Source: Pocillopora damicornis (lineage: Eukaryota). From it: a stretch of DNA of 64,000 bases. Shown piece by piece: positions 24,352-51,300 of the stretch; the first letter of the stretch is position 1; every line of letters starts with the position of its first letter. The position numbers were made by a program, and so were the translations under genes. The stretch is from NCBI RefSeq assembly GCF_003704095.1, contig NW_020843646.1, positions 1-64,000 of the forward strand, given 5' to 3'. The notes beneath the pieces were generated by a model. That model searched no databases, had not been told where the DNA came from, and saw only the letters and a list, made by a program, of their open reading frames with translations.

Positions 24352-27300
24352 TTAAATTCTAGAGTCTACTTCTCCTTCAGCCTCAATCAGTTGAATAACA
24401 GATCGGGTAGGGTAGGCTCCACCAACTGTGGAGCGTTGGTCCTGGTTTCAGTAAAGGAAGAATTCAACTTTAACAGGGAACACTGAACTACCAAGCAACA
24501 TTATGATCATAAGTACCTTGAAATGAATGAAAGTTGAGCGAATGTCACTGCTTCTTGTGGATGAATTTTGTGCTTAAGGTTACCTCCTATGCATTAACCA
24601 AAATTGTTAGGGAACATGGTGTCTCACAAATGATTTGGTTGAGAATAAGCCCAATGACACGAATACCTTGCAGGAAAGGTGGACTATCGCTCTCCTGCAC
24701 ATGTAAACTCAGGAAAGGAGACCATAGTAACTCTTAATTCACCTCTACATACATTACACCCTGAACCTGTTAACAAGTGTATTTCTTGCTAAAGCATCAA
24801 ATTAGGCATGTATTTACAAACTGTGTGCATGAAAACTCTAATGAATACTCACCTCTGCCAATCTAATATCATTTGCACTCATGGCCCCCTTCATTACATC
24901 AGGCATCTAAGAGACAAAAATATCATTATTGTAATGAGTAAGAAAATTGACAAAGTGATAGAACCAAAACAAATGAAAGAGTTCAAAAACAACAGTTTGG
25001 CAGCTTAGAATGCACTTGCTGGTAAGATGATAACAATCTGAGCACAAGTGACGATGCTATGACAATAACAGTGGGATCAAATGAGACTATGCTAGCTGAT
25101 AGACTGAAAACTGAGGGACACAAACCTCGCGACTCATTCTAACATCAGTCAGACTTATGGCTCCGTTCATATAACCAAACTATAAGAAAAAGTAACATCA
25201 AACATTAATTACAGAAACAAAAAAAACATGCATGTAGAACCATTGATGACATATTTTTAAATTGGTGGGAACACTTTCTGCCAATTGCTACATTCAATGT
25301 ATCATTCCAGGTAATGATATTTGAAAATTTCTTTGACATTGGCATCTAGGAGATGAAAATACTATTTTCACAATTAGTAAGAAAATTGACAAACTAATAG
25401 GAAACAAAATAAATGAAAGTTTTCAAAGACAGGAGTTTGTCGTCGGGCTTATAATGCACTTGCTGGTAGGATGACAACCACCTGGGTACAACAAGTGACA
25501 ACAGTATGACAAAATCATTGGGATCGACAGACTCCACAAAAAATACATTGAAAACAAAGGAATACAAACCTCACGACTCATTCTAACATCATTTAGGCTC
25601 AAGGCTCCATTCGGATAACCAATCTAGGAGAAAAAGAAAAATCATGCAAATGAAACAACATGTCCATAGGATCAACCAATGACTATAGGTAGGAACACTT
25701 CCACCAATAACTAAGTTCATTTTGAATGATACTTGAAAAATTTCTTTATCTCCCCCCCCCCCAAAAAAAAAATTACACAATATAGGGCAAAATTCTGAAC
25801 GAATGTTTGTTTCAGAGGTGCAAAACTATTCACTGCACTTAAATCAAAATGTATGACACGTTTGCGCACAAAGATCGCTCACCTCCATTCCCCCATTCGT
25901 CTGATCTCCATAGAGAGTAGGACCAATGTGAGAGCCTCTCTTGGTTCCTTGTCTGAGAGAGCAAAAGATAAATACAACTTCAAGTAAGAAAATGATGATT
26001 TAAGTTTTACACTGGTCTAAGGTACAATATGTGCTTCTGTTTCATGATAATTTAAGTAGTATGAAATCATGATTATTGTACCTGGAAATGTTATTCTGTG
26101 ATCCCATCTCCCTCTTATCTGTTTAAATCAAAATCAAAGAAAAGGATAATAAAATTTGTTAAAACAAAGCTCTTTTATCCATTTTAGCTCCTGTTGTGTG
26201 TATAATTAAAATTGTAACTCTCAGGACTAGCTATTTTCCAACATTTTTTCAACAGCTTGGAATACTTCCACATGTTAAGCATGTGACACTTTACAAGACT
26301 ACACAGTATAGTTAACTGACAAAAGCATTTACCTTTCTTATTGTGCTTCTTTGAACGGCAAAATACAACGATCGAGGAGGCAATTAAAAGGACAAATAAA
26401 ACACTTCCACCAATGGCAGCATATGCCCAAACTGGGAATTCCTCTTTATCTACATGAAACAATCATAAGTTGACATATTTTAGATCACAAACACATGATA
26501 AAAAGTAGCTGAATCAGGTTCAGTCCTTTCAGTAACTCCACTAAATTATTTAAATATGCCAAATCCTCTTTGGAATAGTTTTTGGACATGTTGAATAAAA
26601 ATGGGGTAAAATACATTGCATGCAAGGGTGTTTTTTTTTCTAGAATGGCATGATGGTATTTATAAAAACTTTACTAATAAAATCAAAATGTACAACCAGG
26701 TGTGGTCACATACCTTCAACGGTCACCGTGAGAGTTGCTTCTGGGCCGTGACCCAGTTTATTAGAAGGAACACAGCGATAAGTTCCTTGGTCCTCTTTCT
26801 TGACACTAACAAAAGTAAGTACACCTGTGCTGGATGAGCTGATCAAATTGTTGTTGCGGTAAAATTTATATTCTGCTGAGGGATTGGCACGGGCTGTACA
26901 GGTGAGCACTAAGAGTTTCCCTTCTTGTGCTGGCTCCACCGAACTACTGAGCAGAGTGTCTGTGGGTTTGTCTGGAGAATCAAAATACATAATAAGAAAA
27001 ACAACAATGAGAACAGCTTCTCTCAAGGCACTTCAAAATTACTAATTTACTCATGGAGAAATTAAACATCCAGCAATCTAGTTACTATTCACTTCTCCTA
27101 ACTGGTGGACGCCAGTGAGAGAGAGAAAGAATTCATGGCAAAATCAATTAAGTGGGAATAAATGTGAAATATGTATACATGAAGCACAGGAACTGTTGAT
27201 GACTACCTTCACACATCTTAATTTATTGATTTCATCAAGTTTACAATCCATTTGATCCATTTTTTGAAGATGAGAAACACTTCACTTTCTGAAGTTTCCA

Positions 27301-29309
27301 GGAAACTTTGCCTGTTGCCTGGCAGCCAACATGTCACATGTCTTTGATATTCACCAAATCTTTTTATCACACTTGCTAATCAACAAAGATAAAGACAGCC
27401 AATAACCTAAGATAGCCTAATAACAGCCTTATCAGAATGTCAACCTTAGCACTTGGGATTTAGGACTGATTACCTTTTACACCAAAAGGAAGCTCAAACG
27501 GATAATTATACTATTCCACAGACTAGCAGGCTTCTAGTGCGGTAAGTGTCAATGTACTATTTCTCTCTTATGGGAAAATCAAGGCAGTCTGTGAAATAAT
27601 TTTTAGTTAGGGCAGAAAATCGAATCTTGCTGGCAAAATCTTTGAGTGTTTCAATTAAAAGCCAGAATACATATAAAGAAAATTGTACTACAATACTTTT
27701 ACAGTTTCTACCTCTTAGAAATGGCAGAGATGTGACTCACAATGAGATAAGTTATAACAATTTTTTTTATAATTTTCATTTAAATGCAAATCAATATAGA
27801 AAGTGTAAATTTGTTTTTTAAAAACACCATGCAGCGAAAATGTCCCAATGAAATTTCCTTGTTCACCACAATAGTGTGCAAAATTTTGCATTTCTCCTAT
27901 TCGATGCTTTCTGATATGCAAATCGATAATACTTATGGTAACACCTGCTTATAATTGCCATCATACAAGTTTGCTTGGCTCTTTTGAAATTTTCATCTAA
28001 TATATGTATTTGAACTGTTATTTTCACTCAAAGGGTCTAATATAGTTTGGTTGAAATGTGGAAAGAGAAAGCATTCTCTCTTAAACATATCACATTGGCC
28101 AAAGCATGTGTGATTTGGAAACAGATCTTGACAATCTTCATGTGCCCAAACATAAGCAAGTGTCCTTCCTTTTTTCCTAAGAATGGCTCCTGAATAATAA
28201 GTTTGAAAAAGCAGCAAATGACCAGACAGGAAAAGGGAACATAGAATTGTAAAAACAAATACAAATGGTTCTTCTGCAAAGCCAATTAAGATTAATTTCT
28301 TGTTGACAACGAATGATCTGACATGTGTCTATCTAATTTATACATTTTTTTATCACCATTGACAAGTCTTATGTGTGAATAACAAACTTATTGACAACCG
28401 AAAGCTACAAATCGAAAGAAATGGCGTCGACCGATCGTCGAAAGGAACCATTCAGTTTTAATCATTGTAAATCTACCGTTAGCCTTCGAAGTTGTTTGAG
28501 TCGCGCTACGTGACGAAATCTGATACTCTTTCCTAAAGCCAACCACATCATTTTGGAGGTACATTTACAACGAGATTCTGCTTTGAGAATGTTCTATGAA
28601 CAATAATGATCAGAGTTACGTCGCAGAGGTGACAAGAGAGAACGTTTACTTAGCGAGTCGTAAGGTAGGATAACCCCTAACTTTCAGAACACCTTAAAGT
28701 TATGTAATACTTACATTGTACGTTTAACTCGATAATACTTGGTGATGTGAAGAAACTACTTCGAAATGAGCATTGGTAACGAGTGTGATCTTCTTCGGCT
28801 ACGTTCATAACATTCAAAGTCCTGTCCGAAATGAAAATATGTTGGGGATGATCGTAAATGACTTTGCTTCCAATCAATGTTGAGTTGATGGCTAATCCAG
28901 CCCATTCATCACTGTTGTAAGGTTGTTCTCTGGACCAGGTCAGCAAATGAAATATATTAGCTTGTTGTTCTTCTTGAGGAGTCAGCACATAATCGCATGG
29001 CAGTGAAACATTTGAGCCGGCGACTACGTTAATTACATGGTTTGCCTGTTGCTGATAAGACCATTGAAATCCCTCTGAAATCGAAACCATAAAGGCTATG
29101 AGTCAGACATATTCAAACTCGACTACTAAAAGAGGACCGTTTTCATGCGGCAAACATTTCAGTATTGGCGACATGGTTTGTAACCGCCGCTCGCGTAATT
29201 GATACAATCAAACCAAACTATTTCAAAACTAATTTCAACATCACTTGCCCAGTAAAATTACACAGTTCAGAAAAAATAGTAGCACCCAGGTGGTATTGGA
29301 ACCCTCCAT
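24352..29309 (-). CDS. G2: V-set + I-set Ig, TM, cytoplasmic tail (CTX/JAM/nectin-like architecture)
   Basis: Signal exon 29309-29249 (MEGSNTTWVLLFFLNCVILL, GC donor). V 29074-28715 (VSLPC..LLTW..YQC). Ig 26971-26714. TM 26449-26333. Tail 26118-26082, 25952-25883, 25623-25570, 25179-25126, 24906-24853, 24694-24667, 24572-24517, 24441-24352, ending EVDSRI*. The last three exons are less certain. Confidence 0.8.
24853..25745 (-). repeat. About 444-bp tandem duplication carrying 54-nt cytoplasmic exons of G2
   Basis: agtaagaaaattgacaaa..aaatgaaag..aatgcacttgctggta..acaaacctc..gactcattctaacatca occurs twice. Confidence 0.85.
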
Positions 29310-31257
29310 TCTTCACGCAATCTTCTCGAAGAGGAAGTCCGACATAACTCTTTGTATATTTATTTGTGTTAGTGACAAACTCTCTAGTCCCTCCTCCACT
29401 GACGTCAAACACTTTCGCCGAGCTATTGTTTAAAAAAATTCAATCATGCATAGAATAGACAGGAAATGACAACATTCCGAGGATGACTGATACAGCTTTT
29501 TCTTTATTTGTCACTCCATGTCTAATTTTAGTCCCAGCTTCATTTGAGACGAACTAAACATTTGAGAAGCCAACTCATGTGACTTTTTAATTTTACTTTT
29601 TATTCCTAATTATTTTTTAATAGTTATCGTTTGCAATGTTCAGCAGGTGATATTCAAAAGGAGTAAAAGTTATTTTTCTCAAAGATACCTGCTCGCTCGA
29701 AAAAAGATTTCAGGCCGTACAGATTTTCTGAATACTATATGTAAAATATACGAGGCCGATATTGATTCATGTTTGTCAAGGATCAAGGTAGATAACGTTT
29801 TGATTGGAAAAATATAAGGTATAAAGGTTGTCAGTCCAAACAAAATAATAATTGCGGTGGACTTTGTAACATTCAGGGGTAATTTTAATTGGAAGCTAAT
29901 AGACAACGCTGTGTTGTGCAGATGTCTTACTTTTGCTCGACGACGGAAAGCGACAGAACCGTCTACAGAAAAGCGTTGTAACATCTAACAGTATGCCTAG
30001 CTGGGAAATTGAATGCAAGTTTCAAATTTTGCGGATTTTGCTTGATCTGCAAATATGGGTACACGCTGAAAAAAATACGCAGTGGAATATAACGCCGCAA
30101 AAAAATCATTCTTAGTCCAATACAAAAGTCGAGGGAAATAACGCGGATAAGAGGTTATTCATTCAGTATTCTGATTTCTTTGTCAAATATTTTGCGAAGT
30201 GGTTGTTTACCTTCCTAGATTATCCAGAATTCAGTTAACTTTCCAAAAAAACGTTCCGCGAATCTTAAAATCTCCAATTTGCGATATGAAATTACTGCAA
30301 AGCTAAGCAGCTTTTTCAGCCTTTCCACATGTTTTCCATTTATGTTTTCCCTTTATGTTTTCCCTCTTGGAACAATAGCAATACTGTGTGCTTTGTCTGT
30401 AAGAGATTTTAGCACATGTACGACATCTTTGTGCCTGATTATTTATCTTGTAGCTGTGTCAGTGCGATTGTAAAACTGTGAGTTTTAGATGGCGTTGTCA
30501 GATCGGCCATGTCGTGTCGACGACTGACTGAGACGTATAACAAAGTCCTTTATTCCATTTGCAATAATAAGAACTGAGATTTAACCGGTAGGTTAGACAA
30601 TGTTATGCAGGGTGTTTGGGCCTTTTAATTTAACAAAAAAAATAGACCGTTGTCGAAGATTTGAAGTCTGTAAATAAAAAATGCATTTTAAATTTGCGCG
30701 TTGAAAAAAATCAACGGAGTTGAGTCGAAAGAAAGTGACTCATTTTATGAAAATTATTTGTGTAATTCGTGTTCACAACTTAAATCTGTTGTTAGCATTT
30801 TATTCTATTTCCGCCAGCTAAGGAAATATAATGTGGCTTAATATTGATTCCGCATAATGCTAATGAGTTTTAATGTATTCCGCAGTCTTGTGTTACAAGT
30901 CATCATGAGGTGTTTCCGTCTGGAAATAACACTAAAGGTGTGGTATAAAAGAATTTGATATTTCCGGGTAGAACTTTGAATACTTCACGCGCGTGAGATA
31001 GTCCACGTTAGTCACGCACTTAAAATTCGTGACGCTCTCTTTAAAGAAAAACAAAGAAAGGGTGCATTCACAAGTACCCAAGTTTAATTGTAGCAAAAGA
31101 CACGAGCGTGCACCGAATTGAAGAGGCCTCGTCGCAGTGGGAACGGAGATTAATTAGATCGTGAAAAGATGGTTAATCAGCATGTTTCTTATGTTATTAA
31201 GGTGAACTGGAACTACTGCCACAAGTTTAAATAAGAACCTCCAGGGCATTGTTGATC

Positions 31258-34200
31258 ATGGATAACTCCCTGACAGTTTGGTCGTTTTTTTCGCTGTTTT
31301 GGCTTTCAGGTAAGCCAGGGTGTTATAACTCTCAAAACATATTTTTATATATAAGAATCAGTTTTTTCCTTTTACTCACTTTTTATTCTCTCTCATTTTT
31401 CGAAGAATCTCTGTCTTGGACCATTAAACAGCCCGACAGTGTATACAGAGGATCACCGATCACACTGGAATGGACAATATCACTAACAAAAGAAGAAAAG
31501 AAAAGAGCCGATCGCTTTTCTTTGATTCTCTTGGAACGTGAGAAGTTTCTATATAGCAATCAGTGGCAGATCATGGCTGTTAAACAATATTATAATGGTA
31601 TTTATCAGGAAATCGATGATGAGGACACTTTTGATGTGATTCCTGGAAAGGACATGGCGCTCAAATTGAACAATGTTACTGACACTGATGCTTCTCGATT
31701 TCGCTGCACATTTCTGAGCTCATTTGCTTCTCCGAAGAGTATCATTGAGGTAGAAATAGAAGGTGAGTCCCTGTCGTTTGTGGACGTCTCTATTCTTTAG
31801 ATGTAATACGTAATCTTTTAGGCGCATCCCTGACCTTCTGGGAAGGCATATCACAATTTCAACGTGTCTCTGAATTTACCCAGCGGTTTATCTGGTTCCA
31901 GGAAGCTAACATCAGCACTGCTTTTCAAGGAACATTTGCATAATGTTTGTCTGTGGAGTACGTTCAATATGTATAGTCAGCCAGTGGAAATCTCCAAGCG
32001 TCAATAACCTGCCCTGCACCATCATTTTCCAACAGGGCAGCGGAGTACTCTGTACACTTTTAATAAGGGATGATACTTATGTTATTTCTTTTTTGTTTTA
32101 GATTCTCCGGTATACGTACGTCTTATGGACGGAACTACTCCCAATAAAGGCCGAGTAGAAGTGTACCGAAATGGATTTTGGGGCACCATCTGTAGAGACG
32201 GTTGGGATATCCTGGATGCCTCAGTTGTTTGTCGGATGTTGGGTTATGCGGGAGCCTGGAAAGCTGGCTGTTGTGAGGATTATCGGGGAGGGACTGGTCC
32301 AGTGTGGCTAAGTGAAATTTCATGTACAGGAAGAGAGAAGTCTCTATTAGAATGTGATCACAGTGGTTGGGGTGTCAATAACTGTGATCATAGAAAAGAT
32401 GCTGAGATCGTATGTTACAGTCCACCGACAGAAAAACCGTCGCACTATGTCAGTTTAAAAATCGTGTCAACAAGAACACAGAAATCTCTTTTCTCTAGTA
32501 CAAAAGCAGTTACATCCACAACGGCTCAGTCCATTTTGACACAGGTGTCCCCACCAACACCCTTCAGCCCAACATCAATAGAATTCCAGAAATCGTCAAC
32601 CCACACTGTTCGTGTAACAGAAGCTATAGTAGTATCTCCAAGTTCATCGTCATTGGCCGTCATGTCCAGCTCTGTTATTGCCCCCTTAAATCCCAGTAAG
32701 TAGCCTCCAGTCATATTTGCAGCCTGTTAACAATTGTTGATATGCAATCACTGTCCAAGGCTTTGGCATGATTATAGACGTTCAGGTGTGTTAGCATTCT
32801 GTTGTCAGATGTGGCGATCAAGTTCTGTTTAATTAAACTCGGCTCCCGATTAGAAAAGTAATTAAGACTGAGATCAATCAGGAACTTCTATAGGTGTGTG
32901 CTTAGTGTAGAGATTAACGTCTAGAAAGCACATTTTTCAAACCCATTTGAAGATGATAGGATACAAAAGAACGTTTTTAGGCAGACACTCACCATGCAGT
33001 TCTCTTTTACAGACATGTACACCATAAAATGAAAAATGAGTCGCTCTGTTATGACATAATTGTACAGCTCAACACTGACTGCGTGTAGGTAAGTGCGTAT
33101 TCAACAGTCACGATCACAATTTTGATTTCTTTAAACAGTTTTATATATTGAGCTGTTGAATGGTGGTGGTCACCCAAATCAAGGTCGTGTTTCACTTTAC
33201 TACAATGGCCAGTGGGGAACAATATGCCAAGATCATTGGGACATGAATGATGCGAACGTAGTGTGTCGAATGCTGGGATACCCAGGAGCTTTTGACTTTA
33301 CTAACAGGACAGTTTTTGGCAGTGCTAGCGATGGGCCAATATGGCTTGATGACGTCAACTGCACGGGAATTGAGAGCACGCTTGCAGCTTGTCCACATGC
33401 TGGCTGGGGAAAAAGTAACTGTGATCACACGAAAGATGTGGGGGTGAAATGTGACTTTAATTACACTGTAAAGGCAAAAGGTAAGGCAGAAAATATTTGC
33501 AAACTCTGCAAATTCATCAATTCCCTGTATGTCAGCTTGTGTGTCAAGTAATCGATTTGTACTTCGAAAGAAGCAAAGAAGAAGAAATATCTGAAACTCT
33601 CTCTGCAGATGCAAGCTGCTCATTTGACACTTGGTATTGCGGCTGGGAGAATGGACCAGGCAGCAAGGGGTTAACGTGGACTAGGAAGTTTGGCCCAACG
33701 ATATCACATGAAACCGGACCATCCCAAGATCACACCTCTGGTAGTGGTAAGGAAAGCTTCATACCGAGGAATGTGACTGAGTGATAATGATACAATCGAA
33801 CTTTTTCGTGAAGTATTTTACTGATAGAAAAAGCTCTTACTCTTTAAGCTCACGCCCAAATAAAATGATTAAAATTCTTTTATTTGTCGACCGAACTGAA
33901 AATCAACCTTTTTTCCTGGTGTTTTTGTTTCATTATTAAATGTTCATGCATTTGTTAAATTAACTCTGTCATTAAGTATCACTAACATTATTAATCGCCC
34001 AAGGGATGTCACGCAACACTCTTGTGTTACATCCAAGAGTAAACATAATTACCCTTATTTCATTGTAGTTCTTTCCCCAATGCAGGTTTTTACTTTTACA
34101 TTGAGGCATCTGGACGAAGCAGGGGTGAAGTTGCTTCACTCGTGTCTCCACACATACGAAGTGATGAAAACACCACGTGTATGGTATTCTTCTATCATAT

Positions 34201-37200
34201 GTATGGACAGTCCATTGCTACACTCACAGTGAAGGTTGAAGATCAAGTTTTGTGGCAGTTGTCAGGCAACCAGGGAAATGCTTGGTACAGAGCAACTGTG
34301 CCCCTTAATTTCAATGCAACTTACAGGGTACGGTATAGCTGATCTTTTCACAACCATTCGTCACCTGTATGAAGTAAAGTATTTCAAGACGAACGTGTGT
34401 GTGTTTGTTTTTTTTGTTGTTGTGTTTTCACCTCTTTTCACTCTATTCTTGTTTGTTTTAGGTGATGTTTGAGGGTGTTGTTGGTAGCACTGCACGTAGT
34501 GATATTGCTATCGACGATGTCGAGTTCCAGGAAAATACAGAATGCGAAAAGACAGCTGAAACGTTAGGTAAGTAGACCGCTGAATTTCGAAATTATGCCA
34601 TGCTTAGGGTTAGCAAATAATGAAATAATTGAAATAATTAAGTTGAAATAATTTTTGGTATTACCAGGTACGATGTAAATATAAAAAGAGTTGCAGTTGC
34701 AATCGAACTTGCTGTTCCCGTTAGCAGTTCCCGCCAAGTGCTTCTGTCATTTCCTTCCCTCCTAGAGGAAGTATGGTCGAATGAAGAACGCCTTGCACTA
34801 GCTCTAAATCCAGAGATCCCCGGGCTCGAGAATCACTCTGATCGTTAGATCGTTAGATGGGATTGTTCCTTGCCAGTTTAAATCTACGACCACGCTTGCT
34901 AACGTCAACTAGTATGCCTCTTACTAGTTGGGGTTTTCAATCGTGTCACGCTTGAATACTATTAATAATTTTTTAGTTATTTGAGTGCGTTTAATTAGTG
35001 GACCACGATGAAAACTACAGGGTCATCAGTAGTTGTATCACCCTTAAAAATTATTTTAATCAGTGATAGTGTGAATGACGGTCAATTTGATGGAACCATA
35101 CTTGTAAGACCCTTGGACATTACCTTTCTTGATAACGATCCACGATCTATAATTCGGGAAACTCGATTGAACGATTTTAACCACTTTAGTTCCTCTTTCG
35201 AAGCATACATTTGCTCATACTCTCATACTTTTTCCTTATTTTCAGTTCCGCCAAAAATCATTTGGATTTCCCCAAATCGAACAGCTGAACTTGGTAGTGA
35301 GGTTACATTAGTGTGTACCGTAACTGGTCTCCCCACACCACTTGTAGTATGGAAAAAAAATGGAAAACTTGTTTCGGAGAGTCAGGTGACTGGTAACGTC
35401 ACTCTATTGAACATCACTCAGTCAGATATTGGCAGTTATGAGTGCTGGGCAATTAATGATGNNNNNNNNNNNNNNNNNNNNNNNNNNNNNNNNNNNNNNN
35501 NNNNNNNNNNNNNNNNNNNNNNNNNNNNNNNNNNNNNNNNNNNNNNNNNNNNNNNNNNNNNNNNNNNNNNNNNNNNNNNNNNNNNNNNNNNNNNNNNNNN
35601 NNNNNNNNNNNNNNNNNNNNNNNNNNNNNNNNNNNNNNNNNNNNNNNNNNNNNNNNNNNNNNNNNNNNNNNNNNNNNNNNNNNNNNNNNNNNNNNNNNNN
35701 NNNNNNNNNNNNNNNNNNNNNNNNNNNNNNNNNNNNNNNNNNNNNNNNNNNNNNNNNNNNNNNNNNNNNNNNNNNNNNNNNNNNNNNNNNNNNNNNNNNN
35801 NNNNNNNNNNNNNNNNNNNNNNNNAATGCAAATGACTGTCTAGTCTTTTGGAATGACCTCCGAAAAATACTGAAACTGTGAGTGTGAGAAGCGCAATCTG
35901 GACCAGATATCTTCTAGTAATTGTGCCCCCAATCAAAGACTTAGCTTGTATCAAATTAATCAACTTGTTTCATTCTCTGAAGGATCTCCGAGGAAAATAG
36001 TAATCACCACGAACGTGTCTTGTAACGCGGCCATCCTGGGTGACTCTGTTGCCATACGGTGCTGGTCTCGTGGCTACCCTGCTCCACTCTGTGGCATATA
36101 TCGCGATGGTAACTTACTAAGCGCCAATGGAGGTGTTTATGTAATTGAAAACTTCACTTCTTTGGACCAAGGAGTCTACATTTGCAACTGCTCAAATGTT
36201 GCTGGTGCAGCGCAGGCAAACTTTTCCCTCACACTCTATGGTAAGTGGGTCTGTGATTATATTCTTGTCTTAGAACCAACAAGTGGGAGAATAGTTGACT
36301 TCAAATGGGATATAGTTGTTTGGTAGTATGTGTAAACGACGATCGTGTGATTACCCGAGTCTTAAATGTTAACCAATGATGATAATCAACTTATTTCCAG
36401 AGGGTAACCGTCAACAGTATTTCAACTGATGAACAAGTGGTCCTCTATCCTATATTTGAAATACACTATACAATGTGGAACTAGACAGGAAGGGTCTAAG
36501 AATTGCTTTTTACTCTACAGAGTCCCCAGCTATCCACACCATTCATCCAGCCTATCAACTTGTGAACGAAACAGATACATTTGAGTTTTTTTGTAATGCG
36601 ACGGGAAATCCACCCCCGGCAATAACATGGCGGAAAGTTGGCGACACTAGAAAAGTGCATTCCATAGGACAAACACTGATAATACACAATGCTTACAAAT
36701 CAGACTTTGGCAGCTACCGATGTACCGCAATGAGTGTTCGCGGTGAGAATGTGTCAGCTGTTGCTCGAGTGGAGATGGATAACTGTGAGTCGAATTCCTT
36801 TTTGTATTGTAGTTGGTCACATGAAATAAAATGTTCCAGCTTTGACGGAGGCGACAAATCAATGTCAGCCTTACTTCAGCTAGATTTTGTCGTTCTCCTC
36901 GATTTATTCAGGAAAACAAAATAAGAAGAAATAAACAAGAGTGATTCTCCAGAATGACTTACACGGCATCGTTTAGGCTGGGCCCAAAGTATTAGCACCT
37001 CCAACGGTGTTTGTCAGGTAATGCCCTTCCTCACCCCCCACACTCTCCCAACGATCCATTTCGTATGAGAGCGACTGACAATGTTGTTTGTAAAGAAGGC
37101 TTTTCACGCCGCTGTATTATGATGTGATACTCAAGATTTGTGTTTTTATATATTTTTAGTTTCGCCGACGATCGAGTACATTTGCTGCAACGTTACCGTT

Positions 37201-40200
37201 TTGGAAAAAGAAAGAAGAAATGTTACAATGTCCTGTAATGCAACAGGAAGACCAGCGGCACAGCTGTCCTGGATAAGAGCTGCAGATGGTAAAACTTTGG
37301 TCGCTGGGAACACTCTAGTAATCTCAGCTGCTGGTCGGTCGCATCGCGGTGAATACAGATGCGTCGGTGATAATGGAGTGCGAAGTCCTGTTTCTAAGTC
37401 GGCATATGTGAACGTGCTTTGTAAGTTCAGAATGTTTTTTATGGAAGTCACCAAGGCAATAATTGTTAGAGATATATAATCGTGAGTCCAGCTCCACTTC
37501 AAATTTACAAAGACCCCGGCATGAAAAGAAAAATTGATGCTATCCACAGCATCATCGCGGAATATTTTTCCTATTTTGCTGTTATCAAGAATGCTGTATC
37601 TTTTTCCCATATTTTGTCCATTCTATGTTAGTATGCTACAAGTGCATTGAGATCTATCTGAGATCGAGAATCGTTTTTATCATATTAAGTCCAAATGCTA
37701 GCGAGAAGGTGGAAGACTACACGACAATTCGTGTTGTCCGTACTTTACAATTCAGCAAGTTCTTTGAAATTAATTAAGACGATTTCTCAGGAGTCTCGAA
37801 TTTCATATTCGTCACAAAAACAGCGTCTATTAAAGGGGGTGTGTTGCATGGTTAATATCAAAATCTCAAATGGATGTCTTTCTTTTCCTATAGATAATCC
37901 AATAACTACAAGATTAACAACCGATAAATTAAATGCAGTGGTACTAGGAAATGGTCGCATTGCAATGACTTGCATAACTGATGCCAACCCACCGCCAAGT
38001 CAATACCAGTTTTATCGTAATGGTGTCTACTTAAGAACTAGTTTTACAGGAGTGCATGTTATTCACAAGGCCAGATATTTTGACGCAGGAATCTATCTAT
38101 GCGTACCACTCAACAGGCTTGGCTCTGGTTCAAACGGCTCTGTCAAGGTTTCGGTAGTTGGTAAGTAAGACGCACTCTTGTACCCTAAGTCACCGCAACT
38201 TTATGCGACTTGAAGCAAACTAAGCCTCAGCAAAATTTGATAAAAAAAACACTCTAGAAGGCCTCCAGCAACAAGCACAACATCACACAAGTGATCAACC
38301 TGGCGTTTTTAATATAGTCTTCTGATTTGTGCCGAAATAAAGAGAAACTAGTACGAGGCTTGTGCTTTATTTGACTGTCTTTTTTTTCCATAAGTTTTCA
38401 CTAAAATTAAATGAAATGCAATCTAAATTCCTTCACTTTTTGTCTACAGGTGCTTTTTCTATCATGTACTTTCCACAGAACATGACCGTCAACGAAAGTG
38501 CAAGTGTTTTATTCTTTTGTAATGCTACTTCATATGCCCCATATGACAAATTTGTTCCTCAAATTTCTTGGAGTAAGCTTAGAGACAACAGTAAAGTGTT
38601 ACCACCAGGTCAACAGCTTGTTATAAGGAATGTGAGTCGATACGATGGAGGTACATACATCTGCACAGCAAAGAACGGACTGGGGCTTCCTGATACTAAA
38701 GCGGCGGTGCTAAATGTTCTACGTGAGTAAAAACATTTGACATTATGTGAAAATTAGGATTGTCTTCAGTAACCAACCAATTTGATTGACTTGCAGACCC
38801 GGTTGTTATTATATTCTGCAGATAAACCATACGACACCAAGCTTGGGGCATCAGTTCCAGACAATATTGCAGTATTAAACTCATCTGTAATAATAACTTG
38901 TAGAGCAAAAGCCAACCCACCGGTCATAACCTATAATATTTACCACAATGGCATCCTAGTGTCCAATGCATCTAGTGGAATTTACAACATCACACACGCT
39001 CTGACTGAAGATAATGGATCATATGTCTGTATACCTTACAACGAGTTTGGTGAAGGCGAAAAGGCAGCTTTGAAGGTGTCTTTTGTGGGTATGTAATTGT
39101 GTAAGACTCTCAGCCATGAATCCTTCTTATTTTTTCCAAAGATTTTTGGTGGTTTTCATTGTGTACTTGATTTAGTTTATCATTGTCATCGTCATCTTTT
39201 ATTTGCCTTATTTGCACAATACAAAAAATTTATTTACAGCGGTTATAGCTAGAAGGCGAGGAGAGCCAGGAAGCCACCGAGCTTATGGGAGAGCCACCTC
39301 ACTTACATTAATAAATAAAGAAAAGAAAAAGTGCTGCGAATTTGCGGCTAGGCCAATTCAGTGATTATTTAAATAAAAACTCTTGCATCTTCGTCTTAAA
39401 ACTAGGACGGTTTGACGAACGAGTGACTGAAACAGGAAGAGAGTTCCAAAATTTTAGGACCTTGGTAGAGAATTGTAAATTGCTTGAGATTTGTACGGCA
39501 CAAATGCGTTAGATAATTACTGGCTGTTCTGGTACCATAGTTGTGAATTTGGCTATTCGTTACAAAAAGATTGAGAAGCAATGGAGGCAATAAGTTATTT
39601 CTAAAATAAAACATGAATTTGGCGATTTCAAACGTATTGACTTGGAAAATATCTAAAATTCCTAGTTTGGAGAATAAAGGAGCGGAATGGGCTCGATAGT
39701 CTGAGTTGGTGATAGCCCGCACAGCTCGCTTTTGCAAGAAATAAATTCTATTTAAGTTAGATATGTATGTGGACGACCAGGCGCAGTTACAGTAGACGAT
39801 GTAAGGATAAATTAAGGTGTAGTACAAAGTGAGTTTGGTTGTAGAGGATAGGAAAAAGCGAGACCTGAAAATATAATACCTATTGATTTAGCGATTTGTA
39901 GATACATAGTTGATATGATGTTTCCAGGTGAGATGATCGTCAATATAGACCCCAAGGAATTTAGTTATGTTAGATTGTTGAAGGGGTTTATCTCCAAAGG
40001 AGAGAGAAATGCTGGAGTTAAATTTCTTCTGTCTGGGTTTAAAAATTACGTAGTTAGTTTTCTTTATATTAGTTACAATTTGGTTGCGCTTTATTAGCGG
40101 AGGAATCTCCCTCTGCAAGATATTTTCAGATTCATAACGTTCTTCAAGAGAAGAAGGTAATGATGATATGACCAATATTACTGGAGACAGTAATCTTCAA

Positions 40201-41579
40201 GAATGATATTAATTTTGAACAGTCCGATCGACAAAGCTAATACTTAGAAATAGTCCATACACAGAAAGATAACTTGTGTTTGGCTGGTTGTACTTGACAG
40301 GACCCTGTGGTGTTAAACGTGTGCATCATACCTGGTCGCCTCAGATTGTGGGTGGAGCTTATGCTAAACCAGGTGAATGGCCATGGCAGATCCAGCTGGG
40401 ATACTTTGACAACACCGAAAGCATCCCTCATCTTTGTGGTGGCTCCATCTTGGATCACTATTGGATTGTTACGGCAGCACACTGTGTGAAAAGTGAATTT
40501 GGTAAAAAAGTCCCCGCCAACTTTAATGTCACTGCTGGTAAGTCATGTTTTGTTGGTGCCGTTTTCATCCATTCGGTAGAACTTAGCCATTGGCCCGCAT
40601 CAAAATTGCAATCTCTTGTTATTTTATAATAGAAAGCTTGGTATTTTCATTAAGGCCGAGACACAGTTATGTCGCAGTGTACTTACAGTGATAATATAGC
40701 TTCCATTGGTCTAGTATTATTACGTATGTACGGTAATAACGTCAGTTTTGTTGACATGATTAACGAAGACAGTTATGACGACGAAATTTTATGGCTGAAC
40801 CATACCTCCTCTGTACGTTTAGTCCGTATAAGAATGTAATAAAATATTGCATACAAGATTATCAAAGGATCGAAGTTTTGTATTAGGATGGGTTTGGGGT
40901 GAGTAAGGTACAGGAGGGGATTTTTAACATGCCTTATGCCTTTTGAAAATTTCCATTGAGGAGGTTCTAGTTTACATGCTCATAGGTATGACTGCTGGAC
41001 TGTTTCCTTTCATCGTCAGGTGAACTCCACAGAGGGGTCAGTGAAGGAAGAGAGCAAACTGTTCCGGTAAAGAAGATAATTTTACACCAAAACTTCGACC
41101 AGAAAACCTTACGAAATGATATTGCTTTGATGAAGCTCCAAAGACCAATCTTCTTTGATGTGCATGTGTCACCAATATGCCTTCCGGACTTTGATTTTGA
41201 CGACGGTACTAAGTGTTACGTCACTGGCTGGGGTCGTTCTGGACCTCTTAGTTCGACGCCAGACATTCTTCAGGAGACTTCAATTCCTCTTGTAGCTCAC
41301 AGAGTTTGTCAACTGTATTACAAACAGAAAAGAGTTAACAATGTGACGTCAGACATGCGCTGTGCTGGGACCCTGGGTCAGAGTCGAGGCACATGTAAAG
41401 GTGACAGTGGCGGACCGCTGGCCTGTGAGAGAGACGACCGCTGGTATTTGATGGGTGTTACCAGTTGGGCAAATGAAGGCTGTATGCATAACGGTGATCT
41501 AGGTGTATTTTCAGATGTTTTGTACTTTAGGAGCTGGATTGAAGAAGTCATGAAGAACAATACAAAGACAGCAGAGTAG
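31258..41579 (+). CDS. G3: secreted mosaic serine protease (V-Ig, SRCR, mucin stalk, SRCR, MAM, 7 Ig, S1 peptidase)
   Basis: Exons 31258-31309 (signal), 31406-31762 (V), 32102-32695 (SRCR + S/T-rich), 33139-33480 (SRCR), 33609-33746, 34086-34327, 34462-34567 (MAM). Ig 35246-gap, 35983-36240, 36521-36784, 37160-37420, 37894-38160, 38450-38722, 38822-39088. Protease 40301-40537 and 41020-41579 with TAAHC, NDIAL, GDSGG. No TM segment seen. Confidence 0.88.
34770..34970 (+). mobile_element. Degenerate tRNA-derived SINE-like repeat
   Basis: tggtcgaatg...aaatccagagatccccgggctcgag tRNA-like head, then a body resembling anthozoan SINEs (recognised by eye only). Confidence 0.4.
39190..40085 (-). mobile_element. 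5'-truncated, frameshifted non-LTR retrotransposon (RT C-terminal region plus 3' UTR; CR1/L2-like)
   Basis: ORF pieces NIKKTNYVIF..TKFLGVYIDDHLTWKHHINYV and YYTLIYPYIVYCNCAW..LQKRAVRAI..HSAPLFSKLGIL are typical LINE ORF2 C-terminal motifs; antisense in the G3 intron before the protease exons. Confidence 0.85.
40301..41579 (+). CDS. G3 chymotrypsin-family (S1A) protease domain, 2 exons
   Basis: CG..SPQ|[49 protein letters not shown]. Confidence 0.95.
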
Positions 41580-44465: not shown

Positions 44466-45377
44466 CTAAACAGCTGTCTTGGTATTGTTTTTCATGACTT
44501 CTTCAATCCAAGGTCTGAAATGAAGAGTATCGGAAAATACTCCTGGGTCACCGTTGTGCATACAACCTTCGTTTGTCCAACTTGTAACACCCATTAAATA
44601 CCAGCGGCCGTCTCTTTCACAGGCTAGCGGCCCACCACTGTCTCCTCGACATGTGCCTCGACTCTGACCCAGAGTTCCTGCGCAGCGCATGTCCGGTGTC
44701 ACACTTTGTATACCTACGTAATGGTTTTTGCAGACCGTGTGGTTCATCAGTGGGACAGTGGTTTCTTGAAGAATGTCTGATGGAGAACCCAAAGGTCCCA
44801 GATATCCCCACCCAGTAACATAACAAGAGGTACCGACATCAAAATCAAAATCTGGGAGGCAGATCGGTGACACGTGAGGACCAAACAGAATGGGTTGTTG
44901 CATTTTTATCAGAGCGATGTCGTTTTGTAGGTCAATATCGTCAAAGTTCTCGTGTAAAAATATCTTTTCTACTGGAATGTTCTGTTCACTTCCTTCATTG
45001 ATACCCCTGTGAAGTTCTCCTGAAAATTTAAAAACATCCCGTGAGTGAAAGAACATTGAATACAATTTGAAATATTCCAACTAAACCAGAGGGAGCATTC
45101 GCAGCACCTCTTGAGTAATCTAAGTGACTTGAATGCTTACCAACAGTGACATTAAAATTGGCTGGGGGTTTTTCTTGAAGCTCACGTTTCAGACAGTGAG
45201 CTGCAGTGACAATCCAGTAATGATCCAAGATGGAACCACCGCAAAGATGAGGGATGCTTTCGGTGTTATCAGAGTATCCTAGCTGTACCTGCCACGGCCA
45301 TTCCCCAAGTTTAGCGTAAGCTCCAGCCACAATCTGAGGCGACCAGGTATGATGTACTCGTTTAGCACCACACGGTC
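44466..45377 (-). CDS. G4 S1A protease domain, 2 exons
   Basis: SPQ|[29 protein letters not shown]; catalytic triad intact. Confidence 0.95.
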
Positions 45378-48300
45378 CTGTTTTACAAAAGAGACAAAAT
45401 GAAACAACACCGAAAAAGCCGTTTACAGACTGAGGAAACTTTCCGATATTTAGCAACTAACCTAGTGGTGCGAAAAGTTTCCTTTAGAGCCAAAGTGTCC
45501 CATAATGCAATTCTTCATTTTATTTTTTAAATCTATTTTTTCTCATAATAGATTGGCTTAAAAATCTGTCAGCTACTACTAGATGTTAAAAAGTAAAAAA
45601 ATTACACACCTGTAAAGGTCACGTTTAAAGTTGCCCTTTCGCCTTCACCAAACTCGTTGTAAGGTATACAGACGTAAGATCCATTATGTTCAGCCAGGGC
45701 GTGTGTGATGTTAAGAACGCCGCTGGAAGTATTGGACACAAGGATGCTATCGTGGTAAATTTTATACGATGTAACCGGTGGGTTGGCTTTGGCAGTGCAA
45801 TTCAAGATCAGTGATGAGTTGATTATTGCCACATTATCTGGAATTGATGCCTCCAGTCTGGTGTTGTATGGTTTATCTGTAAAAGAGAGAAAAAATTCAA
45901 CCTCAGTGAGTACGACTCAAACATGTGATAACATTATTATTGACACCGCCTACTCTAAGGCTGTATTCATTGGTATTCATATTGAGTAGTATGGTACAGT
46001 GAAACCCTGTTATAAAGGGGCTTGTGATAGTGAGGTCCCGCGTTTCAGTTGCACTTTATTTAAAGAGGATAGCATCCCATAGAGCTCCAAACTATGTTAA
46101 CTTAGATCTAGATCGTAGCCTGAGCTAGAGAACTAACTGAATATAAATTGATGTATCCCATATCAAATAACAGGTTTGTACTTACACAGCACATTCAAAA
46201 CAGCTCCTGCAGTATCAGGAAGCCCAAGTCCATTATGAGCTGTGCAGATGTACGTTCCTCCGTCGTATCGACTCACATTTTTTATAACAAGCTGTTCGCC
46301 TGATTGATATACTTTACTGTTGTCTCCGAGCTTACTCCATGAGATCATGGTATGGAGATGGTCATATGGAGCATATGAAGTGGCATTACAGAAAAAAGAC
46401 ACACTTGTGCTTTCATTGGCGGTTATATTTCGTGGAGAATAAATAATGGAGAACGCACCTGAATAAAAAAAAAATTAAATCGGATTATATCTTTCTTTAA
46501 GAATAATCAAGTCTCATGAAGCTCAATCCTGTTTTCAGTTTTCTCGCATTGCCATGAGACCGGAAGGCCCTGGAGACATCTTGAATGGAAAGTGATTCTA
46601 ATTCATTTGACGATTACTCACCGATGACAAAAACCTGGATAGTGCCGTTGAAACCGGAGCCAAGAGTGTTAAGTGGTACACATAAGTAGGTTCCCGCATC
46701 AAAATATCTGGCCTTCTGAATGACATATACTCCACTGAGACTCGTTCTGAGGTAGATACCATCGCGATAAAACTGATACTGACTAGGAGGGGGATTGGCA
46801 TCAGTTATGCACGTCAATGCAATGCGACCATTTCCAACGACTACTCCATTTAGTCTGTCGGTGGTTAGTCTTGTCGATGAAGGATGATCTTGAAAAGAAG
46901 GTAAAATTTTAGAACAACAGGAGAGGCATTTATTTTATTTGATGTAAAATGCTCTCAAAAAGTAGACTGTTTTTAACTCTATTGTCTGAACATCACGAAG
47001 GAAATGATTGCGCTGAGTCTCGGGGCTCCAGAGCATGGAGCCACTTTAAATACATCTTCCATTCTTAGCTGTTATGCAAGCCATTCGCCAGCACTGGACG
47101 AAAAGTCTTTAAAATAATATGTAAATACTTATTGATAGTCCTCGAATAAAAAGGAGGACTGCCACGGGAGGGAGGTGTCCTGGAAAAGACACATGGACAC
47201 ACAATCCATAGACCTCTGAGAAGAACCAAAAGCCAAGTATTTAAACGTTTACTGGTTGAAATCAGCGGCGATAAATTTGAGATCAGTGCATTTTGGTCAC
47301 TCAGTTCTGTCCCTGTTAACGACTTTTATATAGGATTCTGCAAACTTGTATGGCAGTAATCCCAGAATCATTACACGTGTGATAAAAAATACTTCATTCT
47401 ACAATTTCAAGATTCCAGAATATTCTTAACTTACAAAGCACGTTCAAATATGCCGATTTAGAGACGGGACTTCGCACTCCGTTATCAGCAACGCATCTGT
47501 ATTCACCCCGATGTGATCTGTCAGCAGATAAGATTACTAGAGTATTTCCGGATGCCACTATTTTTCCATCTCTTTCTCTTATCCAGGACAGCCGTGGAGC
47601 TGGTTTCCCTGTGGCATTACAGTACAGGGTGACATTTTTTCTTTCCTTTTCCATGACAGTAATGTTTTGTGGACTGTGGATAATACTCGCTGCAACTACA
47701 AAAGTAGTTAAACCTTAGGATGATGTTAGTTTCACTCATATACCTTCAAAAACCAATGATGCCTCTGATATAGGTTTGTTTGTCACATTAATATGGCTCA
47801 CTTAATATTAAACTTACAGTTGTCCACCGCCACCATTGCAACGGCTGAAACAATCTCGCCACGCACGCTCACAGCTGTACATTGGTAGCTCCCAAAGTCT
47901 GATATCTCAGCCTTTGTTATCCTCANNNNNNNNNNNNNNNNNNNNNNNNNNNNNNNNNNNNNNNNNNNNNNNNNNNNNNNNNNNNNNNNNNNNNNNNNNN
48001 NNNNNNNNNNNNNNNNNNNNNNNNNTCTTTTCGCACTCTGTATTTTCCTGGAACTCGACATCGTCGATAGCGATATCACTGCGTGGAGTGCTGCCGACGA
48101 CACCTTCAAATATCACCTGCAAAAAAAATTGTTGAAGACATCAAAAATCTAATAATCACATGCGAATGTTTCAAAAACATAAAATGATACTAATCGATCG
48201 GGTGAGGGTAGTCCTGAAAAGGACTGTTGTCGGTAAAAATGACTGACACTGTAACAACCAAGAGCGGAAGTCGTTCGGTTTGGTTTGCTTGCTATGTGAA

Positions 48301-51300
48301 TGTCGCCAACAGCCAGAGGTAATTTTTATGGTGCTGTTAGTTGTTGTTCACATTTTTTGAGGGGAGTCTTCCATAGCCACACCGTAGATGTGTTAACTGC
48401 CTGGTCTGCATACCTGTTTATAGTGCCTTCATAACAAACAAGGGATCCATATCACCTTGCTTTGAATTTTCCGACAAGATTTGTCCAGATGTGCGACGTT
48501 GGATTAACATTCACATTATTAGTCACCAGCGCTAGTAATTAACTAAACTCTCTTACCAAAACCCAATTAAATAGACCATGATATCAGCTAAATATAGGGA
48601 ATCGTTTTAAGTCTTTCAATTTCAAAAGAAGAGTTTCACTAACGATATATTTCTTGCTTGTTTAAATTTTGTGGATCACTGAAAAAGTAAAACTATCTTA
48701 CCCTATAAGTGTCGTTAAAATAAAGAGGCAATGTCGCTTTGTGCCAGTCGTTTCCCTGGTTGCCTGAAAGCTCCCACAAAACTTGATCTCCAACCTTTAC
48801 TCTGAGTGTGTGAATAGCCTGCCCATACATATGATAATAGAACACCATACACGTCGTGTTGCCATTGCTAGCTATGCGTGGAGACTCTATCGTCGAAACG
48901 TCACCGAAGGTTTGTCCAGAAGCTTCTACGTACATGTAAAATCCTGTAATAAAAGCGTTTAGGGTATTGATTTTGTTTCCTTCCAAATTAGGTAATGGAG
49001 TAGTTAATATGGCTAAAATAGATTTTGCCTTCTCTTTAAACATTTACTTTATAGTAGCGACTTTTTTATTTTAAAAATATTTTTAAAATGGTTTAACATT
49101 TTTTGGAAAATTCTGTGAAAAGTTAATTAAAAAAGGACTGCTGGGAAAGAATTGCGATTCTTAGCATAAACCATTGCATGAGAAGTGATAATACCAAATG
49201 CTCTCACCAAATCCAGAGGTGTGATCTTGAGAGGGTCCTGTGTTGCCAGTAACAGTTGGACCAAATTTTCTTGTCCATGCGAGACTCCGGCTGTCTGCTG
49301 AAGTTTCCCAGCCACAATACCAGATGTCAAAATTACAGCTTGCATCTAAAAGAATACATTTCGTTACCAACAAACATTGATTTTATGAGTTAAACGAAAA
49401 TGTAGAACAACCTTATGTAAATTGAGCGAACTAGCTTATTCTTATCCCAAACGGATATATTGGGACGTCACACCACACGCTTTAGAAATGGAAAGAACAT
49501 ATTTTATATTTTATCCTCTAGACTTGAATCAAATTTCTTGGGATAGGGGATAGCACTAGACGTTAACTAACGATTTCCCTCTCAGCTCCGACGCGTACCG
49601 AACATTCCTTTTTTTAACAGCTTGTCATAAATACAGTTGTCAACGAGTGAAAGTTGCCTATTCGTTCCTTTTACATGCTATAGTCGCACCTAAGAAGATA
49701 CTGTAGTGATTACCAACATGACAACCTTACCCTTTGCATTCACAGTGTAATCATAAGCACATTCTACCCCCACATCTTTCGTGTGATCACAGTTACTGTT
49801 TCCCCAACCAGCATGTGGACAAGCTGCGAGCGTGCTCTCATTTCCCGTGCAGTTGACGTCATCTAGCCATATTGGCCCATCAATGGCACTCCCAGAAATT
49901 GTACTGTTGAAGAAGTCAAAAGCTTCCGGGTAGCCCAGCATACGACACACCACGTGGGCATCATTGATATCCCAATGATCTTGACATATCGTACCCCACT
50001 GGCCATTGTAGTAAAGTGAAACACGACCTTCATTTGGAAAGTTTCCATCCAACAGCTCAAGCTCTATCACTGATGATGAGTAATAATAAACCATTGCTTG
50101 TGAAAGTGTTGTTGCCTCAGCCAACTTAAAGCTGTGTCTTTCATCGTCCAAACTTCAGGAAATTGGCTTTTTTATTATAAGAAGTTTGAATAATCAAATG
50201 ACACTTGCTAATATCTAGGAAAATTGTTAAATTCCTGAAGAGATTTAGAGAGAATTATCGTACAGCTCTGCGTGCAGCTGCTTCACACTATTCAATGTAA
50301 ATAAGTGGGGTTGCATGAAGAAATAAGCTTGCTCAAGATTATTCTGTATTTAACAATATTAGAAGATAACAATGCACCTTATGCCACAGCATTTTCCAAA
50401 CTGTAGAATGTGTGTTAATTTTACTGCAGATGTCATTTATGCGTTCCAGTGGCAAACGCAGTTAACGTAATTGTTTCCTCGTTCCTTCTATGAAAAGTGA
50501 CGTTCCCTTTAAATATAAAGCCTACAGTATACGCACGACACATACACATGCCAAACCCTTGTTTATACCTGGATATTTCTCTTTACACACAACACCTGCA
50601 TCATGATCATGGCTGCAGTTATGCGAACCCCATCCTCTGAATGAACACGAAGCCACCGAAGACTCTTTCCCACTGCACCATAAATCATCAAGTAAAATTT
50701 TCTGGCTGGTATTTCCGGCGCCAAATCTTCCTTTCACTTCAGCAGATACAGCCCCGGGAAAACCCGCCATTCGACAAATGACGTCTGCATCTTGAATATC
50801 AAAAAGGTCGCGACACACGGTTCCCCATTCACCGTTGTAGTTGACCTCCACACGACCTTCTCTTTCACTTAACCCATTTACTAATCGAGCATAAACAGCT
50901 GTAGTGATAAAATTTTAAAAAATGTTACTAAAAGGGTAAAGATTCTTCCGCGCGAAAAATTATTACATGTAGCCAGGGAAAACTGCGGTTCTTAGCGTTG
51001 AATCTTTGTAAAGAGGAAAACACAACACAAAGTACCCGTAAGTTTAACCTCTTAACGCGGGTCGTGGTCACCCTTCCTATGATCCCAAAGGATTGCTTTT
51101 ATTTTTCAACTTTTATATAACGACCGTTAAGCGGAAGAAAATATCAGAACTACATGACCATTTTAAGAAAAAGATAAATTCTTCATAAATCCATTCCAAC
51201 GTAGCGGAAGAAAAGGCGTGAAAATTCAAAGAATTCCTAAAATAAAATTTTATTTTCCGCGAGTGACCATGTAATTGAGGTTTCACCGCATAACAGATGG

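Follow-up and report, generated by a model that had tools for sequence, protein, structure and literature searches.

In a stretch of 64,000 nucleotides from the coral Pocillopora damicornis (contig NW_020843646.1 of assembly GCF_003704095.1, positions 1 to 64,000, hereafter the window), a small membrane receptor gene, G2, lies close to two genes for large mosaic serine proteases, G3 and G4, and all three proteins carry a homologous V-type immunoglobulin (Ig) domain (G2-V, G3-V and G4-V). The explanation that we consider probable as a whole is that these domains belong to an old V family with one receptor clade and one protease clade, that genes of the two types have retained their linkage, and that the protease may be able to dock on the receptor. 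The genes and V exons concerned are the following.

24352-29309, minus strand: G2, small receptor gene (open frames, Pfam, RNA for its head)
28715-29074, minus strand: G2 V exon, receptor-type V-set domain, two Cys, phase 1-1 (RNA joints)
31258-41579 (coding), plus strand: G3, SRCR-MAM-Ig-trypsin gene, convergent with G4
31406-31762, plus strand: G3 V exon, protease-type V-like domain, phase 1-1, single Cys, Trp at the position of the B-strand Cys
44466 to ~56715, minus strand: G4, SRCR-MAM-Ig-trypsin gene, convergent with G3
54800-55156, minus strand: G4 V exon, protease-type V-like domain, phase 1-1

A V domain shared by receptor and proteases had been proposed in an initial annotation of the window. 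The peptide strings quoted there were all found in the translations, and 28715 and 31762, between which it placed the shared domain, are both exon ends confirmed by RNA joints, namely the 3' ends of the V exons of G2 (minus strand) and G3 (plus strand), respectively. RNA evidence comes from four runs, one from each of four studies and labelled as coral metagenome or metatranscriptome, whose contigs were placed on positions 26700-32699 of the window. The description of G2 as a membrane receptor was borne out as well, with a signal peptide, a V domain, an Ig domain, a transmembrane (TM) segment and a tail ending in S-R-I, and both G3 and G4 encode SRCR-MAM-Ig-trypsin proteins bearing a signal peptide.

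Homology and fold of the V domains

Searches were run exon by exon. By BLASTP, G2-V was 31% identical to G3-V over 108 amino acids and to G4-V over 111 amino acids (E 3e-15 in both cases), and G3-V and G4-V were 69% identical over 118 amino acids (E 1e-63). All three V exons have phase 1-1 and directly follow the signal-peptide exon, as established by RNA for G2 and G3 and predicted for G4. In six-frame searches of the whole assembly (234.35 Mb, 4393 contigs), the top non-self matches of G2-V were G3-V (7e-8) and G4-V (1e-6), followed by weaker matches at C853:64537 (8.6e-4) and C3577:1377978 (0.01), and G3-V and G2-V were the sole matches of G4-V; receptor and protease domains are reciprocal best matches in the genome. 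A profile built from the three sequences added just these two distant exons. Elsewhere in the genome, at least 101 exons match the Pfam V-set family. Compared with the open frames of the best 30 Pfam V-set loci, G2-V scored at most 7 bits, against 40.7 bits with G3-V and 37.1 bits with G4-V, and is thus closer to the protease domains than to unlinked V domains. We conclude from the sequences that G2-V, G3-V and G4-V are true homologues. The two distant family members, C853:64516-64824 (ALKWDYSLTTEEQ...VYKFTVRF) and C3577:1377975-1378292 (LTWKFTLTADEQ...TYKIVYIV), are unlinked to the window and lack both canonical Cys residues.

The Pfam V-set model PF07686 scored 24.1 bits on G2-V (E 4.4e-5), under its cut-off of 26, and on G3-V and G4-V Pfam gave no V-set match, just a faint match to Izumo-Ig. 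Run against PDB sequences, the family profile returned only generic matches to Ig strands E-F-G. AlphaFold models, for which a family alignment of 26 rows was used, reached a pLDDT of 92 for G3-V and 89 for G2-V, with 9-10 strands including C' and C'', and both place a short helix on the L-T-x-x-E-E...A segment that they share, between strands B and C. With Foldseek, the G3-V model matched VHH and VL domains (TM score ~0.7; probability 1.00 to VHH). The G2-V model matched nectin-1 D1, the sodium-channel subunit beta4 (Nav beta4), D1 of the coxsackievirus and adenovirus receptor (CAR) and MPZL1 (TM score 0.65-0.76), as well as CD48 and 2B4, with probability 1.00 for nectin and CAR D1; its nearest structures are adhesion-type V domains, nectin-1 D1 and CAR D1. 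The feature neighbours of G3-V in the ESM Atlas were cnidarian hypothetical clusters and then V-set clusters of nectin-2, CD200R and PD-1. The predicted folds of G2-V and G3-V are those of V-set domains.

The two types differ in their cores. G2-V has kept the canonical Cys-Cys pair (LPC... and YQC) and the C-strand Trp (LLTW), whereas G3-V and G4-V have a single Cys, with Trp in place of the B-strand Cys (LEW versus LPC) and Leu or Val in place of the C-strand Trp (LILLERE versus LLTWSRE). On sequence grounds, the coral G3/G4 group has lost the canonical disulfide. The subfamily signature comprises a W near the N terminus, L-[TS]-x-x-E with the short B-C helix, an invariant W in strand C' and C-x-F-x-S-S-F...S-I-I at strands F-G.

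Age of the two V types and linkage of their genes

A profile of the three exons, run against 1.84 billion representative proteins, matched 64 proteins at E <=1e-3 and 41 at E <=1e-10, the weaker matches being mostly generic multi-Ig proteins. The three domains fall into a single small V-set subfamily, and its named members all come from anthozoans (corals and Nematostella). Among the receptor-type members are two Nematostella proteins, labelled P0036 and P0041, which carry the NCBI names 'coxsackievirus and adenovirus receptor' (XP_032235922.2, 443 amino acids) and 'cell surface A33 antigen' (XP_032218573.2, 342 amino acids), and a Montipora protein (P0010, XP_068686507.1, 'peroxidasin-like', 673 amino acids), in which the V domain is followed by extra Ig repeats, a TM segment and a tail. 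The protease type is represented in Nematostella by P0034 (EDO38277.1, 668 amino acids), with a signal peptide, a V domain with LEW, MAM and an Ig array; the next gene call on the same strand encodes a trypsin domain. In these Nematostella proteins the V domain is split by an intron (P0034, L017:11857-12027/12821-13009; P0036, L020:12777-12989/14247-14348; P0041, L021:11103-11357/12480-12602), apparently at different places in the protease and receptor types. The V domain is encoded by a single exon in corals and in the Nematostella protease-type exon L021:18733-19065.

In a maximum-likelihood tree of 36 domains over 120 alignment columns, a receptor clade of 12 rows (support 88/90) and a protease clade of 18 rows (support 94/93) each contained both coral and Nematostella rows. 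Forcing G2-V, G3-V and G4-V into one clade was rejected (log-likelihood difference 176, approximately unbiased (AU) test, p-AU 2e-42), as was a single clade of the four Nematostella rows (p-AU 3e-9). The mixed composition of both clades and the AU tests thus indicate that the split between receptor-type and protease-type V domains predates the separation of stony corals from sea anemones, an event of roughly half a billion years ago. The N-terminal V domain of the mosaic protease is as old as this split.

Genes of the two types also adjoin in other anthozoans. In Nematostella (OW051993.1), a gene for a protein of 2026 amino acids lies ~2 kb downstream of the receptor gene P0041 (L021:10001-15650, plus strand) and is encoded on that strand too. 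An early exon of this gene (L021:18733-19065) has 38% identity to G3-V (E 1e-25), and the first 8 kb of the gene encode, besides the V domain, an SRCR and a Thr/Pro-rich linker like those of G3 and G4, about seven further SRCRs and a MAM domain. In a second coral assembly, ERZ25067556, whose exons are ~80-84% identical in DNA, the orthologue of G2-V (86.6% amino acid identity) stands head-to-head with that of G3-V (84.7%) at a distance of 2.65 kb, and the latter is followed by SRCR, SRCR and MAM. A third assembly, ERZ25067872, holds a G4-type protease gene (V, about six SRCRs, MAM) head-to-head with a V exon that is 51% identical to the V-like exon of G5, the gene following G4 in the window (L018/L019). 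The contig location of Montipora P0010 was not found. A local origin of the two V types, as implied by the initial annotation when it proposed a local inverted duplication, is plausible because the receptor and protease types also adjoin in a second coral and in Nematostella. The inverted orientation that it proposed belongs to the corals, the Nematostella pair being in tandem. The two types would have arisen by local duplication or exon shuffling before the coral-sea anemone split, and their genes would have remained neighbours from then on, with a tandem arrangement in Nematostella and a head-to-head one in corals.

In the window, the two genes not only face each other but overlap, as seen from the positions of their exons.

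29249-29309, minus strand: G2 signal-peptide exon, coding part; ATG at 29309; MEGSNTTWVLLFFLNCVILL; RNA joint between 29074 and 29249
26714-26971, minus strand: G2 second Ig exon (Ig_2/Ig_3/I-set; Pfam E 5e-14); RNA joint between 26971 and 28715
26328-26447, minus strand: G2 transmembrane exon, limits approximate (tblastn of orthologue P0009)
24352-24429, minus strand: G2 last coding exon, C terminus ...EVDSRI followed by a TAA stop (P0009 mapping)
27220 to ~28662-28664, plus strand: G3 upstream non-coding exon, 5' limit uncertain, within G2 intron 2 (RNA)
30884-30934 (limits +/-3), plus strand: G3 second non-coding exon; RNA joints between 28662 and 30884 and between 30934 and 31199
31199-31309, plus strand: G3 start-codon exon; ATG at 31258; signal peptide MDNSLTVWSFFSLFWLS; joint between 31309 and 31406 in four RNA runs
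32102-41579, plus strand: remainder of G3, with two SRCRs, MAM-like exons, ~7 Ig domains and trypsin (40276-41579) (Pfam)

Intron 1 of G2 (29075-29248, minus strand) is of the GC-AG type with donor GCAAGT, and its joint, with ends CT..GC, was found in three RNA runs. The joint between the V and Ig exons of G2 was present in four of the four runs, and RNA contigs run past 26714 into KEEFPVWAYA, the sequence of the TM exon. The order signal-V-Ig-TM is thus verified by RNA, and it is the same in the full-length orthologue P0009 (366 amino acids, a transcript contig), which served as guide for G2. For G3, the GT..AG joint between 28662 and 30884 on the plus strand was seen in four RNA runs from four studies, a joint between 31762 and 32102 ties the V exon to the first SRCR exon and confirms the order signal-V-SRCR, and one RNA contig of 2627 nucleotides spans from 27220 into the SRCR exon. 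The upstream exons and their GT..AG joints indicate that transcription of G3 begins within intron 2 of G2 and that G2 and G3 are overlapping divergent units. The first intron of G3 (~28665-30883) encloses the V exon, the signal exon and the promoter region of G2.

Possible docking of the proteases on the receptor

The N-terminal V domain of the proteases could serve as a targeting module, for which the receptor encoded next door would be the most economical target. The initial annotation had suggested such a contact, and for G2-V/G3-V it is favoured by a predicted complex, which scored 0.62 compared with 0.07 for the best of three controls. In calibration, 51 of 78 solved complexes came up to the mark applied, as did 2 of 108 mismatched pairs (39 of 65 and 2 of 126 for eukaryotes). 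The runs agreed in at least 85% of the contacts, with a partner pLDDT of at least 85. In both chains the predicted contacts involve the F/G end as well as strands C, C' and C'', which makes a classical front-face dimer; CAR D1 and nectin D1 pair through the same G, F, C, C', C'' sheet, and several PDB entries matched by G2-V are dimers of this type. The model supports a front-face G2-V/G3-V heterodimer. If so, the protease V domain would pair by its C-C'-C''-F/G face with G2-V and dock the secreted protease on cells bearing G2. We regard docking of the protease at such surfaces through V-V pairing as possible but rather unlikely, and we hold still more tentatively that G2 is the cognate docking partner or substrate of G3 and G4, bound through a V-V heterodimer, in a pair that would have stood side by side since before the coral-sea anemone divergence.

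Several points weigh against this reading. The binding is a model prediction. Since front-face V-V dimers are abundant among solved structures, the success of the complex may stem from memorisation by the model. Furthermore, the complex score is blind to which family member binds, and the pair modelled was G2-V/G3-V. The predicted interface showed no enrichment of invariant residues (5 of its 21 positions versus 30 of 118 overall). Around the Nematostella genes P0036 and P0034 no partner-type V exon was found within 10 kb, so linkage is not obligatory. Finally, the clade supports of 88-94 are good but below the maximum and come from 120 columns.

The main alternative, which we rate above docking and to which we give close to an even chance, is that the domains are ancient paralogues that now work independently, G2 in homophilic adhesion like CAR and nectins, the protease V domain on another ligand or on itself, with the linkage as a passive leftover of tandem duplication. 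An identity of only 31%, the remodelled core of the protease type (Cys to Trp), the unlinked P0036 and P0034 and the inability of the complex test to separate family members all fit independence. However, passive retention does not predict adjacency in lineages separated for so long, and the heterodimer model passed its controls.

Alternatively, what holds the pair together might be shared cis-regulation from a control region that is bidirectional or overlapping, and not contact between the proteins. We think this less likely than independence, and consider it doubtful, although the upstream exon of G3 lies in G2 intron 2, the first intron of G3 encloses the signal and V exons of G2, and a block of 1.2 kb surrounding the V exon of G2 (28231-29407) is ~73% identical to ERZ25067556 where other non-coding sequence cannot be aligned. 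On the other hand, the Nematostella pair is arranged in tandem without overlap, and regulatory coupling would be compatible with protein contact. Retention through shared regulation can be combined with either docking or independent V domains.

A recent local inverted duplication that grafted the signal and V exons of G2 onto a protease, or the reverse, as proposed in the initial annotation, is very improbable. Such a graft would explain why the V exons stand head-to-head, 2.3 kb apart, with equal phase and equal position after the signal exon, but the domains are just 31% identical, both V types have Nematostella orthologues, and uniting the three exons in one clade costs the 176 log-likelihood units given above. 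The shared signal exon did not hold up either. The likeness of G2 (MEGSNTTW...) and G3 (MDNSLTVW...), which we considered as a sign of signal-exon homology, follows a pattern M[ED]xSxTxW that is not conserved in the orthologues (MKVYNTAW... in P0009, MYRVAIIF... in P0003), and a common signal exon is therefore unsupported. Least credible of all is that the likeness of the V domains reflects generic Ig-fold similarity or chance, for although the Pfam V-set match is sub-threshold for G2-V and absent for G3-V and G4-V and the PDB sequence matches are limited to generic E-F-G strands, the three domains are reciprocal best matches across the whole genome, G2-V scores 37-41 bits with the other two and no more than 7-9 bits with 30 further V-set loci, and the three have a family-specific motif in common with 40 proteins of other species.

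G2 resembles CAR (CXADR) and the nectins in its layout of a signal peptide, a V domain, one further Ig domain, a TM segment and a tail of the S-x-I type, and the predicted G2-V/G3-V interface lies on the sheet that those receptors use. The fold match is good (TM score 0.65-0.76), but sequence identity is 15-22%, and G2-V differs by its short B-C helix. By analogy, G2 may work like a V-C2 receptor of the CAR or nectin type. With the family profile, a CXADR-like V domain (P0057) was matched at E 8e-5. The CTX/CAR-like type I layout, with a distal V domain and a proximal C2-type Ig domain, was found in G2 (RNA, Pfam Ig_2/Ig_3). CTX family members have an extra intradomain disulfide in the C2 domain. 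Since the Ig exon of G2 encodes two Cys only, and since the link to vertebrates consists of NCBI names and the weak P0057 match, membership of G2 in the CTX family is not established. We know of no vertebrate CAR or nectin member that shares its V domain with a neighbouring protease.

Linked receptor-ligand pairs of the Ig superfamily (IgSF) born by duplication are known from CD2 and CD58/CD48. The pair described here likewise consists of neighbouring paralogous V domains with a proposed front-sheet pairing, but CD2, CD58 and CD48 are all membrane IgSF proteins, whereas here one partner would be a secreted multidomain serine protease and the binding is predicted. What appears to be new is thus a protease as one of two linked paralogous V-domain partners, such linked partners being of a known kind. 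If the pairing is true, it provides a candidate surface partner for these large cnidarian proteases, a pair that can be put to the test in Nematostella, where genetic tools exist, and an anthozoan means to aim extracellular proteolysis at cell contacts, for instance at junctions, in tissue fusion and rejection, or at the symbiont interface. Even without binding, the data define a V-set subfamily missed by Pfam, including a natural Trp-for-disulfide variant, and they document that two genes of different function have kept their microsynteny across a very deep split and, in corals, are transcribed divergently with overlap.

Related proteases and neighbouring genes

An SRCR-Ig-trypsin configuration has been reported in five of six cnidarian resources and called potentially novel (PMC5119243, 2016). 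G3 and G4 have the same SRCR-Ig-trypsin build as these proteases; the N-terminal V-like domain, which Pfam misses, is not mentioned there. In the literature, we found no description of the N-terminal V domain of the proteases, of its kinship to the neighbouring receptor or of the conserved linkage, and nothing specific on the family accessions or on cnidarian CAR-like receptors. Membership of both G3 and G4 in the SRCR-Ig-trypsin group is indicated by Pfam matches that are colinear on one strand in each gene and by the motifs TAAHC and GDSGGP, present in both. The MAM-like exons of G3 were assigned by their nucleotide likeness to the G4 MAM exon. At the trypsin activation sites (40276-40629, plus strand; 45028-45456, minus strand), ...TWSPQ is followed by IVGG or IVAG, with Gln preceding Ile.

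Enteropeptidase and neurotrypsin are vertebrate mosaic serine proteases with SRCR domains, and enteropeptidase also has MAM. As in G3 and G4, their trypsin-fold domain is C-terminal, behind SRCR or MAM, but the order of modules is different and both lack an Ig array and an N-terminal V domain. Enteropeptidase, in addition, has a membrane anchor of its own, whereas G3 and G4 have only a signal peptide.

The remaining features of the window are listed below.

56661-56715, minus strand: candidate G4 signal-peptide exon, phase 1 donor, predicted only (sequence scan)
44466-54293, minus strand: remainder of G4, with six SRCRs, MAM, Ig domains and trypsin (44466-45456) (Pfam)
from ~59300 past the window end, plus strand: G5, V-like and Ig gene
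59491-59850, plus strand: G5 V-like exon, head-to-head with G4, kinship to the family uncertain
~1-21000, plus strand: G1, long Ig array with EGF and TM (open frames, Pfam)

By blastn, G3 and G4 showed an exon-by-exon inverted colinearity, with 71-88% DNA identity in the exons and introns that cannot be aligned. Four SRCR exons of G4 (50522-53451, minus strand) have no counterpart in G3. About six SRCRs are also found in the ERZ25067872 protease beside the G5-like exon, and the G3 orthologue of ERZ25067556 has two. G3 and G4 most probably represent an old inverted duplication of a whole protease gene, with no graft from G2; this duplication would have come later than the split between receptor and protease V domains.

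G5 (59297-59850, plus strand, to 64000) has a signal-like exon (MYRCVSFWLSLAALCPSVS), a V-like exon of 119 amino acids with LEW at the B strand, and hemicentin-like Ig exons. Its V-like domain had no BLAST match to G2-V and, to G4-V, only a match over 41 N-terminal amino acids. Compared with the V family it reached an hhalign probability of 55%, and in the tree it formed a very long branch outside the family. We considered G5-V as a duplicate of G2-V in a palindrome [G2<->G3][G4<->G5], which the layout resembles, but think it doubtful, G5-V being only weakly related to the family.

The tail of G2 contains short exons (25567-25623, 25123-25176 and 24853-24906, minus strand) that repeat the motif (A/G)-x-S-x-[ND]-D-[VI]-R-[ML], of which Montipora P0010 has more copies. 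The first two align to one segment of the orthologue, which may point to alternative exon use or to a tandem repeat. The C termini of G2 (S-R-I), Montipora P0010 (S-Q-L) and Nematostella P0041 (T-Q-L) all fit the PDZ-type pattern S/T-x-hydrophobic, unlike that of Nematostella P0036, which ends in S-T-T.

Within G3, a run of N lies at ~35.4-35.8 kb, and in the intron just 5' of the trypsin exons (39402-40175, minus strand) there are frames that resemble the C-terminal part of a non-LTR (long terminal repeat) retrotransposon reverse transcriptase.

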